Below are positions 1 through 8,369 of a stretch of DNA of 8,369 bases, piece by piece; the first letter of the stretch is position 1, and every line of letters starts with the position of its first letter. The DNA lies in assembly GCF_006345805.1 (NCBI RefSeq), contig NW_021828380.1:1-8369 (forward strand), read 5' to 3'. Source of the stretch: Octopus sinensis. Its lineage: Eukaryota. The position numbers and the translations under genes are program-made. The notes below the pieces were generated by a model that saw only the letters and a list, made by a program, of their open reading frames with translations, was not told the DNA's origin and ran no database searches.

Positions 1-155
1 GTCCCCGTTACTTAGCGGTTCGGCCAAAAGAGACCGATAGAATAAGTACTGGCTTACAAAATAATAAGTCCCGGAGTCGAGTTGCTCGATTAAAGGCGGT
101 GCTCCAGCATGGCCGCAGTCAAATGACTGAAACAAGTAAAAGAGTTAAAGAGTAA
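1..155 (+). mobile_element. SINE, 3' portion (cut by window edge) with short A-rich repeat tail
   Basis: Aligns with 1340-1500 of the complete copy (ccccgtaacttagcggttc...aaaagagaccgatag...catggccgcagtcaaatgactgaaacaagtaaa) and ends in gtaaaagagttaaagagtaa. Confidence 0.9.
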
Positions 156-565
156 CCAGACCAATCGATTTCTCGACAGCATTGTAACTTGCGATGATAA
201 GTGAATTCTGTACAATAATGAAAGAGAAAAAAAAACGTTCTTCGCAGCGGTTGAAACAAAATGAAGTACCGAAAAACCTTCCCTAAACCCAAGCCGTTCA
301 AATAGAGGGTTATCGTGTCTGTTTGGCAGTATATTGCTGGATTCGTCCACTATAACTTCTTAAACCCCGAAAAAAAAAAACATTACTGTAGAAACAGTCG
401 AAAAGCTGCTACTCCTCCGTCGCAGAATGGTAAACAGAAGAATGGACAAACAATCTTTATGACAATGCTCGACCACATGTTTCACTAGTCACGCTCCAGA
501 ATTTGAGGGAACTTGGCTAGGAAGTTCTTTCACACCCATCTTATTCCCCAGACCGTTTTCCAACA

Positions 566-860
566 GATATATGTATATGTATATATATATATACGTGTGT
601 GTGTGTGTGCGCGCGCGCGTAAATATGTATATGTATATATTTATGTTTTTGCGTCTATGTTTGTTCCCCAATCACCGCTTAGCTACCGATGTTGGTATGT
701 TTACGTCCCTGTAACTTAGCAATTCGTCAAAGGAATCCGTAATAGAATATGGCGGGTAAAATACGCCCTGGGGACGATTTCTCGATTGAAAGCCTCTTCA
801 GGGCGGTGTTACAGTTTGGCCCTAGTCTAATGATTGAAATAAATCAAAGAATATAAACAA
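566..860 (+). mobile_element. Old, diverged SINE copy (internal microsatellite + 3' half)
   Basis: TA/TG/CG microsatellite at 566-640, then degenerate matches to the other copies: tgtttacgtccctgtaacttagc (699-721), gggcggtg, tagtctaatgattgaaa (823-839), and an aaagaata tail. No recognisable tRNA head upstream. Confidence 0.75.
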
Positions 861-862
861 CT

Positions 863-1090
863 AGGCGCAGGCGTGACTGTGTTGTAAGTAGCTTGCTTAC
901 CAACCACATGGTTCCGGGTTCAGTTCCACTACGTGGCACCTTTGCAAATGATTTCGGGTCGACCAAAGCCTTGTGAGTGGATATGGTAGACGGAAACTGA
1001 AAAAAGTCCGTCGTATATATGTATATATGAATGTACGTACATACCTATATCTAAATATATATATATGTATACATATATATATTTATATAT
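863..1090 (+). mobile_element. SINE 5' half (tRNA-like head + body + AT microsatellite), lacking the 3' half
   Basis: 863-1013 is ~93% identical to 1092-1243 (hand count). It has a degenerate A box at 874-884 and B box GGTTCAGTTCC at 917-927. Confidence 0.9.
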
Positions 1091-1091
1091 C

Positions 1092-1252
1092 AGGCGCAGG
1101 AGTGGCTGTGTAGTAAGTAGCTTGCTTACGAACTACATGGTTCCGGGTTCAGTTCCACTACGTGGCACCTTTGGCAAATGATTTCGGGTCGACCAAAGCC
1201 TTGTGAGTGGATATGGTAGACGGAAACTGAAAGAAGCCCCGACGTATATAAG

Positions 1253-1284
<32 letters not shown>

Positions 1285-1526
1285 TGTATGTGTCTATGTT
1301 GTGTGACTGTATTTGTCCCCATATCATCGCTTGACAACAGATGCTGGTGTGTTGACGACCCCGTAACTTAGCGGTTCAGCAAAAGAGACCGATAGAGTAA
1401 CTACTAGGCGTACAAAAAATAAGTCCTCGGGTCGATATGCTGAACCAAAGGCAAGGCAGAGCATGGCCGCAGTCAAATGATTGAAACAAGTAAACGAATA
1501 TAAGAATACAAGAATAAAAGAATAAG
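1092..1526 (+). mobile_element. Complete tRNA-derived SINE with internal (TA)n and (NAAGAATA)n tail
   Basis: Contains a tRNA-like head with A/B boxes, a body, (TA)n at ~1245-1280, a 3' region matching 1-155, a stem-loop at 1470-1483, and the 8-nt repeat tail taagaata/caagaata/aaagaata at 1501-1524. It resembles abundant octopus SINEs (from recall, not searched). Confidence 0.9.
1103..1156 (+). promoter_or_regulatory. RNA polymerase III type-2 internal promoter (A box, B box) of the SINE head
   Basis: TGGCTGTGTAG at 1103-1113 approximates A box TGGCNNAGTGG. GGTTCAGTTCC at 1146-1156 approximates B box GGTTCGANNCC. The spacing is tRNA-like. Confidence 0.7.
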
Positions 1527-1945
1527 ACCTTCGATTTTGTTGGGTCACAGTACGTCTCTCGCCACCATGTACCTAATAATTATATATGTACGGTAGTCAC
1601 AATATGTTTCAAGAGAATGCATATAGGAATGATTTAGGTGAGGTAACTAACCAATTTTATACACCAAGTATATTATTTTTATTTTGTTTTCTCCGTATTT
1701 AGATCAAACAAATCATAACTATATTTTATTTCATGATCATTATCAGAATTTGGAATAATAACGATATATTTGATCTTTAGAAAAGCAGACGACGGTTTAG
1801 ATTTTATGAAAATCTATATCCCTCATACGTCGAATACGTTTTTTTTTACTCTTCTACTCCAATTCCCTCTCTGTCTGTCTGTCTCTCTTCCACAATCATT
1901 CAATCTGTTGCTTGTTTCAGTAACCTTGTATACGCACGTACGTTT

Positions 1946-2001
1946 GTATGTATGTATGTATGTATGTATGTATGTATGTATGTATGTATGTATGTATGTA
2001 T
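1946..2001. repeat. (GTAT)14 microsatellite
   Basis: 14 perfect GTAT units. Confidence 0.95.
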
Positions 2002-2300
2002 ACACGTACGTACTATGTATGTGTGTATGTAAGTATTATTATGTATATATGTATGAATATATATATATATACTTATATATATTTATGTATGTATGCACAT
2101 AACTACGTACGTATTTATGTGTGCATGTTAGTATGTATGTATGTATGTATGTATACACGTACGAACTATGTATGTGTGTTTGTAAGTATTATGTATATAT
2201 GTATGAATATATATATATATATATATACTTATATATATTTATGTATGTATGCACATAACTACGTACGTATATATGTGTGCATGTATCTATGTATGTATGT
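1999..2300. repeat. Two-copy tandem duplication (period ~153 bp) of compound AT/GT low-complexity DNA
   Basis: tatacacgtacg starts at 1999 and 2152. Both copies carry gtaagtatt, gaatatat, acttatatatatttatg and gcacataactacgtacgtat. Confidence 0.9.
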
Positions 2301-2403
2301 ATATATATATATATGTGTGTGTGCGTGTTTGTGTGTGTCTGTATATAAATATAATTATTTGATTTGTTTCATGTTTAAAGTCGTGGTCTTGCTGGGGTCC
2401 CAA

Positions 2404-2439
2404 ATACACATATATATACACATACGCACACACATATAC

Positions 2440-2472
<33 letters not shown>
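2404..2472. repeat. Compound (CA)/(TA)n microsatellite
   Basis: Mixed CA/TA run ending in pure (TA)n directly before the palindrome. Confidence 0.9.
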
Positions 2473-2475
<3 letters not shown>

Positions 2476-2811
2476 CATTTATAAAAGGGCTTAGTAAAAT
2501 AAATTACTTTGCCGCATACTGAACTCGTTAGAAATAGCAGCTAAAAAACTATTTCTAACACTAAAGAAAACCTCTCTCATATAGTGCTTGCTCAATTCAC
2601 CCAAGAAAGTATGAGGTAGAGACATTAAAAATCAAATGCAAGGCATTTTTAATGTCTCTACCCTCATACTTTCTTGGGTTGAATTGAGCAAGCACTATAT
2701 GAGAGAGGTTTTCTTTAAGTGTTAGAAATAGTTTTTTTAGCTGCTATTTCTAACGAGTTCAGTATGCGGCAAAGTAATTTATTTTACTAAGCCCTTTTAT
2801 ATAATGTAATA
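2471..2811. repeat. Near-perfect long inverted repeat (arms 2471-2632 and 2645-2811)
   Basis: The arms are reverse complements with no substitutions. They differ by five 1-nt indels and are separated by a 12-nt spacer (caaatgcaaggc). Confidence 0.95.
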
Positions 2812-2859
2812 ATTTGAATTTGCCTTAAATGGTCCCTTTGCATACTGAATACTTGGTGA

Positions 2860-2959
2860 AATTGATTAATTAATTAATTAATTTTACCCTCAATTGTTGA
2901 AATTATATATATATATATATATAAAATTGAACAAGGGTAAAAATTCATATTAATCAATT
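2860..2959. repeat. Imperfect palindrome centred on a (TA)n tract
   Basis: aattgattaat (2860-2870) pairs with attaatcaatt (2949-2959), and ttttaccct (2882-2890) pairs with agggtaaaa (2934-2942), around (TA)n at ~2904-2922. Confidence 0.7.
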
Positions 2960-3019
2960 AAAACCTAGCATATTAAAAAAATCCTAACATTAAAATATTT
3001 TTGAATGTAAAAAATTGTG

Positions 3020-3036
3020 TATATATATATATATAT
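3020..3036. repeat. (TA)n microsatellite
   Basis: Pure TA run. Confidence 0.9.
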
Positions 3037-3427
3037 CCGGTTCCGTTTTCAGCAGAGAGAGACGTATTGCCTCTTCTCTGTGAAAAAGTTTGTGCATAGA
3101 TGGGCGAAATAACCCACTGTAGTTGCAAAACGTAAAACTCTAAGTCATAGAGATCACTACAACACTTTGGTTAAAATATTAAAAAAAATATTATATCAAT
3201 ATATACATATACACAGTAATTTTCATTTTCGCCGAAACGCACATGGTGCAAAAATAACTGAATCAAGTTATCTCCTGCAAGAAAGAAAAAAGAAGCATCT
3301 CTCCTGAAAAAAAATCCCGTAAACCAAAAAAAAAATTCAGACCACATTGTTGGATTAAGTATCACTTTCATCTATTTCATATTTTGTTTATTATTCTATT
3401 TTATCCCCCTTCACTTAGGCCCACATC

Positions 3428-3465
3428 TCAGTTAAAGTTGCGATCGCCATTTTTGTTTGTTTACA
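3428..3465 (+). promoter_or_regulatory. Putative internal Pol II promoter of the LINE (Inr-like + YY1-like + forkhead-like motifs)
   Basis: TCAGTT at 3428-3433 fits the initiator TCAKTY. CGCCATTTT at 3445-3453 fits YY1 CGCCATNTT. TGTTTAC lies at 3458-3464. Based on motif matches only. Confidence 0.45.
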
Positions 3466-3489
3466 TTTTCAATATCTGTTCTCGATATA

Positions 3490-3885
3490 ATAATTTTTCA
3501 GATACTCTATCTTCTAATTAGCCTTAAGATTAAATTAAATAACGTTTAATATTAATAACGTCTAATTAGCCTTAAGATTAAATTAAATAACGTTAATATT
3601 GTTAATATTGTTAAATTATTGTTATTAGCCTTAAGATTAAATTAAATAACGTTTAATATTGTTTAATATTGTTAATAATTTTTTCAGATACTCTATCTTC
3701 TAATTAGCCTTAAGATTAATTAAATAACGTTTAATATTACCCACACTCTATATAATATTATATTGCTAATATATTTTCAGATACTCTATCTCCTAATTAG
3801 CCTTAAGATTAAATAACGTTTTTACCCACAAACTTTAATATTGTTAATATTTCTTTTCAAGTACTCTATCTTCTAATTACCTTAA
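3490..3885 (+). repeat. Modular tandem repeat array in the putative LINE 5' UTR
   Basis: Core TTAGCCTTAAG at 3518, 3566, 3625, 3704 and 3797, with a degenerate sixth copy at ~3877. Recurring modules are ttttcagatactctatcttc, aattaaataacgttt, aatattgtt and tacccaca. Confidence 0.9.
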
Positions 3886-3947
3886 TATCTTCCTGTCTTC
3901 TCTCGAACATAATTACATAGATAAAACGGATAGACGGATTATCCAGC

Positions 3948-4663
3948 ATGTCCAGAGGCATGGAGACCTGACGAGCTGGATTATTCGTACAAGCATGGGA
4001 GTGTGCGCCGGCGGAGATAGCCCTAGCGAGGTGATTGCGGCTGCGCTGAAGAGCAGAGGCTACAAGAGGACAGCGGCTCAGATGGAGCGAAAGAGACAGG
4101 AATTCGTGCGCTCATATGCGCTTGTACGGTCGCACATTGGCGCACTTGATGCCATCTTTGAGAACGAGCGGGGCAAAGATGGCAAGAATGGAGACGATGA
4201 AAGAAGTCACCCCCACCTGGTGGACGCCCGGGAGGAGGTTTTGAATGAGAAACCTGCCCGGGAAGTGAACCCAGGTGCAAGTTCTCCAACCGGCAGCAAG
4301 GGCCATGGAGACGGAGAACCCGGTGAAGAGGTAGAGGGAGGAAGAAGAACTAAAAGAAGGACTGGAAGAGCTAAAGGAAAAGAAAAAGCTCAAGCAGGAC
4401 CAAAGGGTGAAAAAACCAGGAATAGAAGTGGAACCGCAAAAGATGGAACCAAACAGCGCACACGGGTGTGTATGTTCTACCTGAGAGGTTCCTGCTGGCA
4501 TGGAAAGGAAGGTGCAGGCTGCCGCTTTGCACATCGGGGACCCTGTCACAGAGACACGAGGCAGATGGACAAACCATCAACACAAAGAAAAGGGATGGAC
4601 CACGCACCACCTGCCCCCAAGCGGAGTACGCAGATGTGTGCGCACCACAAACCGCCAACATGA
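3948..4663 (+). pseudogene. LINE ORF1 (frameshifted as given): Myb/SANT-like N-terminal domain, charged low-complexity linker, CCCH zinc finger
   Basis: ATG at 3948. Restoring deletions near 3951, 3980 and 4022 gives MSPEAWRPDELDLFVQAWECAPAEIAPSEVIAAALKSRGYKRTAAQMERKRQEFVRSY. The open 3995-4663 frame contains CMFYLRGSCWHGKEGAGCRFAH (C-x7-C-x8-C-x3-H, 4469-4534). Confidence 0.75.
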
Positions 4664-4842
4664 TGTTGTCGAAAGGGCAGCTGCTGAGCAACAATCTTTT
4701 TTGTGCATGGCACAAAGATTGTACAGCAGCTGACCTGGCTTCATCAAACCCAAGCCCGCAGGTGGACTACCCACTATATACCAGACCACCACAGCAAACA
4801 AACACAGATGACACCGCCGGCAACAACGTACACCTCACCTCG

Positions 4843-5510
4843 ATGCTCCTACTGAACATCAGAGGACTGCAAACACTCAGTAACAGGACAAAGATCCCGT
4901 TCCTGAGAGACTTTGTTGCATGCAATCAAGCCTTATGCATAGCACTTAGGAAACGCACCTGAAACCGGACATAGCAGATGCGGAGTTACACATACCACAG
5001 TATGCTGTACTACGGACCGACAGGAAAGAAAGGAGTCATGGAGGTGTTGCTATGTACATCCGTGAGGACCGCACACCCCAGGTCTTCTTGTCATACTCAA
5101 ACTCGGTGTGTGACACACTAATTGTACATATTAGGCAACTTGATGGGTTGTGTGTGCTACATATCGCCCTCCAGATGCCCCAAGCCATGTGGGCAAGTTT
5201 GAAGACTGCCTTATAAAAATAGAAGTTCTAACCACATTAGAACAACACATAGGTGTGCTTCTTATGGGAGACTTGAATCTGCCCAATGTCAGATGGCCCG
5301 AGGGCCTTCTCTCCAGGAATGACAAGATGTGAACGAGGACAGGCGAGGTCCCTCCTGAACCTCATCAACACCCTGTACATGGAGCAGGTAATACTCCAAC
5401 CAACCAACAGGCAAGTAACACACTGGATCTCTGCTTCACAAATGACATGGATCTCATCCATAATGTAAAGTGAACCCCGACACTACTCTCGGATCACAAC
5501 ATGATAGAGC
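4843..5510 (+). other. APE (exonuclease/endonuclease/phosphatase family) domain of ORF2
   Basis: NIRG at ~4855, ETHL from 4950, YRPP, GDLN and LDL are present, as is the SDH catalytic motif at 5489-5497. Confidence 0.9.
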
Positions 5511-6229
5511 TGACCATGTACGGGCCAAAAGAGAGCACGACATGCAGCTACAAGAAACCCTCAAATCTTTCCAGCTTGAACTACCATAAGGCAAACTGGA
5601 AACAAATTGAGAAGAGATCCTCAAACAAAACTGGCCTAAATGTCTCTCCTCGCCAGACATCGACGTGAAACTTCAACAATTCATGTCTGTAATGCAAGCC
5701 ATATGCTACAAATGTGTCCCAGAGAGAAAGGCCACTGTACACAAGAACAAAATCCCCAGAGAGAGGAAAATTTAATGAGACGGCGTACGAATTTTCAAAT
5801 CGCCTAAACAAACAGATTGAAAGCAGTGAAAAGTCCCGCCTAAAATAAAACTGTTGAAATCGAAAAATGTCTGCAACTCTCCCTGAAAAGAAAGAGCAGA
5901 CAAAGAGCCTGGGCTATAGAAAACATAAAATCTAACCCCAGAGCTTTCTACAGGTATGCCAAAGAAACAGCTACAGTGTACTGTAGAATAGGGCCACTCC
6001 TCGAAAAGGATGGCACACTTACAGGAAAACCAATGAGGGTAAGTGAAATACTGAATGAGCAATTCAAGAGTGTTTTCACTCCACCCCTTGGGCATCTCCA
6101 AATCACCAATCCAACTGACTTTTTTACCACTGCAGATATAAATCAGAGGCGGCGACGATAGATTACATCGATATAAAGGAAGACGATGTAACAAGGCTAT
6201 AGATGAAATGAAAACAGACTCAGCTACTG

Positions 6230-7110
6230 CCCCGATGGATTCCCGGCAATCCTCCTAAAAGCATGTAAGAGAGTCCTAGCAAGACCACTGCAGTTCCTCT
6301 TTCACAGCTTCCTTGCAGCTGGCAAACTTCCAGGAAAACTGAAGGAAGGTAAAATATGCCCCATTCATAAAGGAGGTAGCAGAGCGGAAGCCAAGAACTA
6401 TAGACCTATCTCTCTGACCTCACACATCAGCAAGGTCATGGAACGAATAGTCAGAAGGAAGCTAATCACCTCCTTGAAGAGAATGACTTGCTGCCCGACA
6501 CCCAACATGGTTTCCGACCAGGGAAAGCTGTTTAACTCAGCTCCTACAACACTATGACTGGGTGCTGAAACGGCTGCCACCACTCAAATGTGGAAGTGAT
6601 ATATCTCGACTTTGCAAGGCCTTTGATAAAGTCGATCATGGAATGATATGTCACAAACTGCGTGATCTCAACATAGTTGGAAAACTGGGAGATGGCTTCA
6701 TGACTTTCTGAAGGATAGAAGTCAGGTGGTAGTAGCCAATGGGGCCACTTCCATTAACACAACAAATAGTGAGCGGTGTTCCGCAGGGCACTGTTCTGGG
6801 ACCACTACTGTTCATAATGGCCCTCTCAGACATGCCCTCAGCCACGCAGAGAGCCACGATCACAAGTTATGCAGATGATACAAAAGTTTCACAGGCAATA
6901 CAGAACCCTGAGACACTAAACACCTGCAATGTGAACTGGACGAAATATACAAGTGGCTGAAAAGAATAGCATGCAGTTCAATGCTGGAAAGTTTCAAGCT
7001 TTATACTATCAGCATGCAAAACTGAATGCAATACCCAATGAATACACTGGACCCGGAGGGATTGCAATCCCAGAGGCACAATCAGTGCGTGACCTGGGTA
7101 TTCACATGAG
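6230..7110 (+). other. Non-LTR reverse transcriptase domain of ORF2
   Basis: NYRPISLTS from 6396, QHGFR from 6503, YLDFA from 6602, GVPQG at 6775-6789, and catalytic YADD at 6868-6879. Confidence 0.95.
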
Positions 7111-7796
7111 TGATGACGCGACTTTCATGTACATGTTGCTAAACTGACAATGAAATGTAGACGGCTGGCTGGCTGGATTCTTAGAACCTTTAGAACAAGA
7201 GAACAAGAAACCATGATGGTCCTCTGGAAGACACTTGTCCTAAGCCACTTTGACTATTGCTCTCAGCTATGGTCACCATCCAGTGTCAAGCTGATCACAG
7301 AACTTGAGGCGATCCAACGAAGCTACACGAAGAAGATAGCCTCTGTGCAGCATATGAGCTACTGGGAGAGACTCAAGAGATTAAGCTCTATTCCCTGGAG
7401 CGTAGGCGGAGAAGATATGCCATATATACATCTGGAAGATCCTGGAAGGCCTTGTCCCAGACTTTGGCATCGAGAGTCACACAAATGCCAGAACCGGACG
7501 CCACTGTGTAGTACCAAGGACTCCACTTTGCCATCAAGATGTAGGACAAGATATTGTGATAGCCTGGGCTTCAGAGGCCCACGGCTCTTCAAAATCCTCC
7601 CGAAGAACCTGAGGGACCTGCATGTGTGATGCGGATGTCTTTAAAGTAGGAACTGGATTCTCTTCCTGTCGGTGTCCCGAATGAAACCAACTTCACGGCA
7701 GGAGGTGCAGATGAGAGCAGCTGCATCGAACTCTCTCATGCCCAGATGGCGTTTGCCAGAAACATCCGTGAGGTAAAACCGTGTAGCAAACCCAAT

Positions 7797-7835
7797 GGCG
7801 GTGCCCCAGCATGGCCACAGCTCATTAGCTGAAAC
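7797..7835 (+). other. LINE 3' terminal region shared with the SINEs, with stem-loop CAGCT-CATT-AGCTG (7818-7831)
   Basis: Gapless 31/39 identity to SINE 95-133 and a perfect 5-bp stem with a 4-nt loop. Confidence 0.85.
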
Positions 7836-7844
7836 TGGAAAAAT

Positions 7845-7874
7845 AATCAAAATCAAAATCAAAATCAAAATCAA
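7845..7874 (+). repeat. (AATCAA)5 LINE 3' tail
   Basis: Five perfect hexamers 13 nt after the stem-loop. Short tandem-repeat tails are typical of CR1/L2-type LINEs. Confidence 0.9.
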
Positions 7875-7879
7875 TATAT

Positions 7880-7911
<32 letters not shown>
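7875..7911. repeat. (TA)n microsatellite abutting the LINE tail
   Basis: TA run with one phase shift. Confidence 0.9.
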
Positions 7912-7912
<1 letters not shown>

Positions 7913-8096
7913 TATATAAAAGGCTTAGTAAAATAATTACTTTGCCGCATACTGAACTCATTAGAAATAGTAGCTAAAAAAACTTTTTTAAAAACTATTT
8001 CTAATACTTAAAGAAAACCTCTCTCATATAGTGTTTGCTCCTCAATTCAACTCACGAAAGTATGGGGGAAAGACATTAAAAAATCAAATGCAAAGG
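7911..8096 (+). repeat. Third, more diverged copy of the palindrome-arm sequence (same orientation as 2471-2643)
   Basis: ggcttagtaaaata-attactttgccgcatactgaactc...aagaaaacctctctcatatagtg...gacattaaaa-atcaaatgcaa(a)gg matches 2487-2643 with scattered substitutions and two small insertions. Confidence 0.92.
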
Positions 8097-8369
8097 TTAT
8101 TGAGAACGTACGTTTTCAAGATTAGTCAACCGACATTTCTATCATCAGCTCAGAACTCCTTGGTTTGGATTTGAAAACACTGAAAGTGGGAGCATACCTT
8201 TCGTCTTCTTATCGCGTTCAGAAGATCTGCTCGAAACTAACAGTGCCAGCAAACTCAACTATGCAAGCGAAGAATTTCTGCTCTCCCCTTTCCACGCTGC
8301 GTGGTTAAAATCAGTAAACACTATGCTTTTTTCGGTAAAATCCGGGCATTAAATAGAGAGAGATGAATT

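Follow-up and report, generated by a model that had tools for sequence, protein, structure and literature searches.

A two-hairpin 3' tail common to a CR1/L2-like LINE lineage and a composite SINE of Octopus sinensis, and its probable origin in the LINE

Two kinds of retroelement end alike in an 8,369-nucleotide (nt) stretch of the Octopus sinensis genome (NCBI RefSeq assembly GCF_006345805.1, contig NW_021828380.1, positions 1 to 8,369 of the forward strand), which is called the window below and is always meant at its full length. One is a decayed long interspersed nuclear element (LINE), the other is a short interspersed nuclear element (SINE) present in three copies, and the question that this locus raises is where the SINE obtained its 3' end and which machinery copies it. 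An earlier note, made from the letters of the window, had proposed that a 39-nt segment shared by the two elements carries a stem-loop that the SINE borrowed from the LINE. Our analysis makes it probable that the last ~40 nt of the SINE before its A-rich repeats were taken from this LINE lineage, and that a module of two hairpins within them is recognised for copying in trans.

The LINE segment at 7797-7835 (GGCGGTGCCCCAGCATGGCCACAGCTCATTAGCTGAAAC) and the SINE segment at 95-133 (GGCGGTGCTCCAGCATGGCCGCAGTCAAATGACTGAAAC) are identical at 31 of 39 positions in an ungapped alignment, and the coordinates and letters on which the earlier note had based this identity were exact. At the base composition of the window the chance of at least 31 matches in 39 is 5e-12 per position and about 9e-8 across both strands, while the highest-scoring unrelated 39-mer within the window reached 24/39. 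A repeat search placed the segments 92-149, 799-856, 1446-1503, and 7794-7851 in one family (D10). A covariance model built from seven octopod sequences (four LINE tails and the three SINE copies) found only the four tail copies in the window at E below 1e-14, with scores of 47 to 66 bits for the SINE and LINE tails, and nothing further below E = 0.1. A minus-strand segment at 2363-2404 with 24/39 identity was considered as an extra degenerate tail and dismissed (5.9 bits, E = 5), and a weak match of the model at 234-260 (E = 0.17) was taken as chance. In BLAST comparison, the similarity between the SINE and the LINE was limited to the tail.

The tail consists, at the level of RNA, of two adjacent hairpins (H1 and H2), an unpaired (G)AAAC, and short tandem repeats. 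Its parts in the LINE and in the first SINE copy are as follows.

7796 to 7817, plus strand: H1 of the LINE tail, UGGC-G-GUGC-[CCCA]-GCAU-G-GCCA, with a 4-bp lower stem, a 1x1 G.G mismatch, a 4-bp upper stem, and an NCCA loop, present in both the minimum free energy (MFE) and the centroid structure of RNAfold.
7818 to 7831, plus strand: H2 of the LINE tail, CAGCU-[CAUU]-AGCUG, folded by RNAfold; this is the stem-loop of the earlier note.
7832 to 7874, plus strand: 3' end of the LINE, with a single-stranded AAAC at 7832-7835, a short linker, and the microsatellite (AATCAA)5 at 7845-7874.
94 to 133, plus strand: tail of SINE copy 1, with H1 at 95-114, H2 at 116-129, and AAAC at 130-133; 66 bits with the covariance model.

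When each LINE tail and SINE copy 1 were run singly through RNAfold, the identical two-hairpin fold was obtained, and the fold of SINE copy 1 contains both hairpins with z = -2.9. The earlier note had described a single shared stem-loop; that hairpin, H2, is real, but the conserved unit is about 40 nt long (7796-7835) and holds two hairpins, and the overlooked H1 carries the most conserved features of the module. In its general form H1 has a GGC/GCC lower stem, an invariant G.G mismatch, an upper stem of 4-5 bp, and an NCCA-type loop, and H2 has the form CAGNN-[3-6 nt]-NNCUG with a stem of 5-6 bp, in which the inner pairs covary and the loop is free in sequence and length.

The eight mismatches between the two 39-mers are at positions 9, 21, 25, 26, 27, 29, 31, and 32. 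Positions 25 and 32 (C-G to U-A) and positions 26 and 31 (U-A to C-G) make up two compensated pairs of the H2 stem, positions 27 and 29 lie within its 4-nt loop, position 9 is the first loop base of H1, and position 21 is on the 3' side of the outermost H1 pair; all eight differences are thus confined to loops, two compensated stem pairs, or a helix end. This position check reproduced the earlier count of four mismatches in two compensated pairs and two more in the 4-nt loop. In comparison to the commonest form of H2 (CAGCC/GGCUG), the window LINE has altered pair 5 and the SINE has altered pair 4, each from C-G to U-A, and the two compensations are independent events rather than one swap. The letters of the other two SINE copies at 1470-1483 (CAGTC/GATTG) and 823-836 (TAGTC/GATTG) are also as first described, but the G-U pairs to which the earlier note had pointed are weak evidence of selection, because each arose by one C-to-T transition in a copy that is dead and decayed.

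From one sequence pair, two compensated pairs could be luck, and nested repeats and microsatellites crowd the window; a SINE fragment might have been inserted at the end of this LINE, or the resemblance might be a coincidence and the compensation accidental. The other LINE copies bear directly on this. The 39-nt tail closes three further LINE copies, one on a metagenome contig (L001, tail GGCGGTGCCCCAGCATGGCCACAGCCTGCGGGCTGAAAC) and two from Argonauta hians (L002, tail GGCGGTGCCCCAGCATGGCCCCAGCCGGCAATGGCTGAAAC, and L003, tail GGTGGTGCACCAGCATGACCACAGCCGACTCGGCTGAAAC). The second open reading frame (ORF2) of L001 (P0001) is 67% identical to that of the window LINE at the amino acid (aa) level, with 76% nucleotide identity over 1583 nt, and those of L002 and L003 are 56-58% identical at the aa level to the stitched window ORF2. 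These are its nearest ORF2 relatives in the protein search, whose matches are unnamed or labelled 'hypothetical', and they mark the window as octopod. In all four LINEs the tail begins 9-26 nt past the ORF2 stop and a lineage-specific microsatellite comes directly after it; in the window it begins at 7796, 19 nt past the stop, and the 39-mer is roughly the entire 3' untranslated region (UTR). Identity among the four LINEs is 79-86% in the tail in comparison to 60-74% for the 700 nt upstream, and the tail differences cluster in the H2 loop and in compensated pairs.

The segment therefore is no SINE fragment peculiar to this locus: it stands at the ORF2 stop in L001, L002, and L003, between that stop and the microsatellite, and the similarity to the SINE is restricted to it, with no other SINE sequence upstream of the LINE tail. 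The 39-nt segment is the genuine terminus of the LINE family. With a chance probability of about 1e-7 for the match and a tail placed alike in four independent LINE copies of at least two genera, we regard a local artefact or coincidence as having a negligible probability. A scan of public metagenome contigs with the tail pattern, which met no cephalopod DNA, yielded 51 matches, all of them chance matches in unrelated, GC-rich bacterial sequence in which the downstream half of the motif is missing, and the complete motif is accordingly uncommon; only one of the 51 (L014) has CTGAAA shortly past the match. The same pattern had one match among viral contigs, which was also chance. A second ORF2 search, with P0001, returned only P0001, P0002, and P0005 above 60% identity and no additional close tail-bearing LINEs.

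The structure of the tail is supported by covariation. Across the seven octopod sequences and 13 pairs, 92.3% of the cells are paired, a share that drops to 45% or less when the partners are slid, and double changes occur in four of the pairs. The H2 helix is paired in 100% of the cells, with covariation at pairs 4 and 5, and compensation is also seen in the lower stem of H1, where the fourth pair changes from C-G to U-A in L003 and the outermost pair from U-A to G-C in L002 and SINE copy 2. The covariance model further locates the module at the 3' end of three distant LINE families with 46-48% ORF2 identity, represented by L064 (27.9 bits, E = 2e-8), L060 (18.1 bits), and L061-63 (14.4 bits), in each of which it sits between the end of ORF2 and the microsatellite. 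In L060, L061, and L064 the upper stem of H1 and the stem of H2 have been swapped for other sequences (GAGA/UCUU, GAGUC/GACUU, GAGAG/CUCUC, GAGC/GCUC) with pairing retained, while GGCGG, the G.G mismatch, UGGCC, and (G)AAC are unchanged. With the distant families added, compensatory changes are found in 7 of the 13 pairs, and 92.1% of the cells are paired in comparison to at most 36% with slid partners, values that none of 500 shuffles equalled. RNAalifold on an independent MAFFT alignment gave the same 13 pairs with 7 compensated, and the single-sequence MFE folds of L060 and L064 concur with the model. The stem is thus conserved, through compensatory changes, both among the octopod LINEs and in the three distant families.

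In L061 (4155-4196), and likewise in L062 and L063, H1 lies within the last ORF2 codons, with the UGA stop falling precisely between the two hairpins, so that one stretch of bases is both coding sequence and tail structure. This overlap in L061-63 is also what could be cited for an explanation in which the tail is conserved as a coding signal or as a DNA-level signal, such as a promoter or a target-site motif, and its pairing is incidental. In the window LINE, L001, L002, L003, L060, and L064, however, the module lies fully past the stop, and neither pair-preserving substitutions on both arms nor the low pairing of slid partners (about 30%) is predicted by a constraint on DNA or on coding. We therefore hold conservation of this kind, with no role for RNA structure, to be extremely improbable.

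The SINE is composite, consisting of a head, a conserved block of 56 nt, an internal (TA)n microsatellite, a 3' module of ~200 nt, the tail, and A-rich repeats. One of the three copies in the window is full-length and two are 5'-truncated.

1 to 157, plus strand: SINE copy 1, cut at the window edge and represented by the 3' module only; BLAST identity to the full copy is 82% over 142 nt.
647 to 862, plus strand: SINE copy 2, 5'-truncated and decayed, with the tail at 802-840 and repeats at 841-862 (D10, D12); 52.9 bits with the covariance model.
863 to 1526, plus strand: SINE copy 3, full length, with the 3' module at 1284-1487, the tail at 1449-1487, and (AAGAATA)-like repeats at 1488-1526; 47.6 bits with the covariance model.

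The A-rich repeat of copy 1 is AAGTAAAAGAGTTAAAGAGTAA at 134-155, and in copy 2 the upper stem of H1 is degraded. Copy 3, which contains the internal (TA)n microsatellite, carries its head and conserved block as a tandem duplicate (863-1010 and 1092-1250); the duplicated parts within 863-1290 (D13, D14) are 94-96% identical at a spacing of 229-230, and the heads are more alike than those of unrelated SINE copies, which suggests a local duplication via the internal microsatellite and not two insertions. Box-A-like and box-B-like strings were read in the head by eye only. ARAGORN found no transfer RNA (tRNA) in the window, and Rfam gave no tRNA match at E <= 1, leaving the SINE head unrecognised, and returned only microRNA (miRNA)-like noise driven by microsatellites.

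The 56-nt block at 1184-1239 is 89-93% identical to Argonauta SINEs by BLAST. The octopus SINEs OR1 or OR2 are said to have been described by Ohshima and Okada in 1994. An octopus SINE has been classed as a CORE-SINE, as OR1 (PMC4824008) and as OR2 (PMC4758252), and the window SINE resembles these octopus CORE-SINEs (tRNA-Core in RepeatMasker) in having a conserved central block, which was compared here with Argonauta SINEs alone.

In head and 56-nt block the Argonauta SINEs agree with the window SINE, but their 3' module is another one; the tail itself is borne by the Argonauta LINEs. The SINE copies of Argonauta hians (L002 at 5430-5830, minus strand, 6380-6840, minus strand, and 7980-8256, plus strand; L003 at 11850-12370, minus strand) have a 3' module that ends in ..CATTTACATTTTACA. 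Different 3' modules on a shared SINE head mean that 3' modules have been exchanged among octopod SINEs. Sequence similarity by itself is directionless, and the shuffling of SINE 3' modules is common in molluscs (PMC11481361, PMC4758252), so that in principle the SINE could have given the LINE its tail, or a third source could have supplied both. The distribution of the module speaks otherwise: the architecture GGCGG...UGGCC plus (G)AAC closes LINE families from other samples whose ORF2 identity is just 46-48%, and the Argonauta LINEs have the tail while the observed Argonauta SINEs have another. With the module present in the distant and the Argonauta LINEs, its history in LINEs is therefore longer, and its spread wider, than in the window SINE. 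We consider a reverse or third-party capture very unlikely, and, because the module is old and widespread in LINEs and the related Argonauta SINEs carry another 3' module, the sequence comparison favours the direction from LINE to SINE, with the module ancestral in the LINEs and captured by the SINE. The same distribution supports the proposal of the earlier note that this LINE lineage was the source of the SINE 3' end.

The LINE copy itself is a dead, near full-length octopod element of about 3.9 kb, and its coding parts are the following.

3995 to 4663, plus strand: LINE ORF1, 222 aa, open frame intact, with a CCCH zinc-finger-like motif (from the list of open reading frames).
4690 to 7776, plus strand: remnant of LINE ORF2, heavily decayed, with an apurinic/apyrimidinic (AP) endonuclease at ~4800-5600, a reverse transcriptase (RT) at ~6230-7100, and a C-terminal region.

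In tblastn with P0001, P0002, and P0005 the ORF2 alignment spans all three frames with at least 11 in-frame stops, and a three-frame reading puts the ORF2 stop at the TAA of 7774-7776. Pfam on the stitched ORF2 translations identified Exo_endo_phos_2 (5e-12) and RVT_1 (8e-27) and no other domain. The element thus has a CCCH-type ORF1, an AP-endonuclease and RT, a very short 3' UTR, and a microsatellite, which Tandem Repeats Finder described at 7845-7874 with period 6, 5.0 copies, and 100% matches. Features of the CR1/L2 type (CR1 superclade) are present, namely an ORF2 with AP-endonuclease and RT, an ORF1 apart from it, and the absence of an RNase H domain by Pfam, and its relatives are alike in this. 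CR1-type 3' ends have a very short 3' UTR in which one or more hairpins are followed by a lineage-specific octamer microsatellite, with no poly(A), and SINEs copy such ends. A tortoise pair of an RNA polymerase III (Pol III) SINE and CR1, and CR1 3' ends in general, were reportedly treated by Ohshima et al. in 1996 and by Suh in 2015. A short 3' UTR with a lineage-specific terminal microsatellite was found in the window LINE and in all 9 related LINE families that were retrieved.

The frame of ORF1 remains open despite the wrecked ORF2. On this ORF1 Pfam reported Torus and zf-CCCH weakly, under the curated cut-offs, and a protein search with it found no homologues. L060, a distant relative, has an upstream open reading frame at 1-479 with a weak zf-CCCH_4, and a CCCH-type zinc-finger signal in ORF1 of the LINE clade is accordingly seen in both L060 and the window. 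A minisatellite at 3480-3900, with units of ~48-93 nt (..TTTTCAGATACTCTATCTTCTAATTAGCCTTAAGATTAAAT..), abuts the 5' end of the LINE upstream; this array could belong to the 5' UTR of the LINE or have nothing to do with it.

At the level of families, a partnership in which the LINE donated its tail to the SINE, with recognition of the stringent type, is well supported. The statement in the earlier note that both partners sit in one window is right at that level, but the window LINE is dead, and the Argonauta LINEs stand just as close to the SINE as it does. A number of points weigh against our reading. The four LINE tails are equally near to the SINE (31-34 of ~40), and the H2 version of the SINE (CAGUC/GACUG with an AAAU loop) occurs in none of the four; none of the sampled LINEs therefore stands out as the driver subfamily. 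The copy in the window is inactive, and its repeat unit (AATCAA) is unlike the A-rich, heptamer-like repeats of the SINE, whose terminal repeats resemble those of L001 (18/24) and L002. Four LINEs of the wider clade (L004, L005, L058, and L059) gave no significant match to the tail model and were left out of the evidence, though they have the general layout, with short, hairpin-rich 3' UTRs and microsatellites. The covariation alignments were fitted to the model and the pair counts are biased its way, which is mitigated by the single-sequence folds and by RNAalifold on the MAFFT alignment. The sample is small and made up of individual copies (four close LINE tails, three distant families, and three decayed SINE copies from the window), and ORF2 binding, mobilisation in trans, and the choice of driver subfamily are inferred.

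The missing counterpart of the SINE's H2 stem and loop among four equally distant LINEs and the differing repeats also speak for another possibility, in which the tail is a relic. The SINE would have captured the tail of this lineage, but most of its copies would have been amplified by another element, either an unsampled subfamily whose H2 and repeats match those of the SINE or an unrelated LINE such as RTE, and the LINE and the SINEs of the window would not be functional partners. It would fit with this that the loop sets specificity in ZfL2 elements (PMC4176376), and that the LINE reported to be both full-length and transcribed in the octopus brain is of the RTE type (PMC9115989). An unsampled subfamily, however, would refine the explanation by capture from this lineage and not contradict it, and the SINE has no RTE-like tail. 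The best SINE copy also retains both hairpins, the G.G mismatch, the NCCA loop, GAAAC, and L001-like repeats, as selection for this machinery predicts. In view of both sides we rate a relic tail as unlikely, although with clearly more weight than the other alternatives above, and retain donation of the tail by this LINE lineage, with recognition in trans, as the probable explanation.

The mechanism that we propose is modelled on UnaL2, ZfL2-1, and ZfL2-2. The ORF2 protein of the LINE would bind the two-hairpin module on its own transcript and would start reverse transcription within the terminal repeats at a nicked target site, and a Pol III transcript of the SINE with the same module and similar repeats would be accepted in trans and hence copied. 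In UnaL2 the stem has a hinge mismatch (U-U plus a bulged C, and A-A in zebrafish relatives) that is conserved and needed for efficient retrotransposition, and the loops differ between UnaL2-related elements (PMC1636434). The octopod tail is like that of the eel elements UnaL2, UnaSINE1, and UnaSINE2 (L2 clade, stringent type) in being a stem-loop tail, with a G.G mismatch in the middle of the H1 stem and repeats directly after it, and the G.G mismatch would be the obvious counterpart of the UnaL2 hinge. It is unlike UnaL2 in having two adjacent hairpins and not one long hinged stem, in the nature of the mismatch (G.G), and in its cephalopod host, and the likeness is one of architecture as read from sequence.

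The ORF2 protein of ZfL2 binds the cognate 3' stem-loop via a region between its endonuclease and RT domains, and one ZfL2 stem may replace another as long as the bases still pair, but retrotransposition is lost when the stem is disrupted or the loop changed (PMC4176376). Exchange of stems with pairing kept is the pattern that the octopod covariation implies. Unlike in ZfL2, where the loop is the specificity determinant, the H2 loop of the octopod tail varies even among close lineages, whereas the NCCA loop of H1 is conserved. A loop-specific contact, if any, would therefore fall on H1, and the conserved H1 loop is a likelier candidate for a sequence-specific contact than the freely varying H2 loop.

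Among molluscs, the tails of the bivalve CORE, V, Deu, and Meta SINEs match the 3' ends of CR1, CR1-Zenon, L2, and Nimb LINEs over 35-61 bp with 72-95% identity, and bivalve SINE families exchange tail modules (PMC11481361). The octopod match, over 39-45 nt with ~79-85% identity, is similar to these bivalve HCD-SINE/LINE pairs, and so is the presence of another tail in the Argonauta SINE relatives. The bivalve pairs were called by sequence similarity and activity profiles, without analysis of structure or covariation, and the cephalopod case adds both. Shared SINE/LINE tails are long established, and in this respect the mechanism is confirmed and not new; the two-hairpin architecture with clade-wide covariation is a modest addition. 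A literature search, which left Repbase and Dfam outside its scope, found no paper that names a LINE partner of the octopus SINEs or describes this tail, and a search with the tail and SINE sequence strings returned nothing relevant.

Several other features lie in the window. A near-perfect palindrome of ~330 nt at 2476-2810 has arms at 2480-2548 and 2733-2801 that are 100% complementary, with further arm segments inward (I1, I2, I24), and looks like a foldback/miniature inverted-repeat transposable element (MITE)-type element or a very recent inverted duplication. A partial third copy of its arm is found at 7919-8095 (85-97% by segment; D11, D17, D18), and (TA)n precedes both places. In the region 150-560, mariner-like transposase remnants were seen by eye in the three-frame reading (..CDDK.ILYNN.., ..YDNARPHV.., and ..HPSYSPD..); a Pfam scan of the stitched translation of 150-560 gave no match, and the mariner-like reading is unconfirmed. 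A large compound microsatellite of (TATG)n, (TA)n, and (TG)n occupies 1920-2470 and contains a higher-order repeat of ~156 nt (2040-2160 in comparison to 2196-2316, 88%; D3), and it is this block that accounts for the spurious miRNA-like matches of Rfam.

SINEs of the tRNA-Core and tRNA-Deu classes predominate in octopus genomes, and SINEs make up ~40% of the transposable element content and are the largest repeat class, with an expansion that is octopus-specific (PMC8967140). Although ORF2 identity falls below 50%, the module has been kept from the octopods to the hosts of L060, L061, and L064. As a tentative extension, which we hold to be possible but on balance doubtful, the two-hairpin module might have served, from the ancestor on, as the RT-recognition element for an invertebrate LINE clade as a whole, with H1 as a constant platform and H2 as a fast-evolving specificity element or spacer tracked by SINE subfamilies, and the octopus SINE expansion might have been driven by a CR1/L2-like lineage and not by RTE. 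In general, the tail module is a concrete candidate for the LINE partnership behind the octopus SINEs. It can be used as a search model to annotate the 3' ends of cephalopod LINEs and SINEs, and it offers an invertebrate counterpart of UnaL2 and ZfL2 with which the rules of stringent LINE recognition may be compared.

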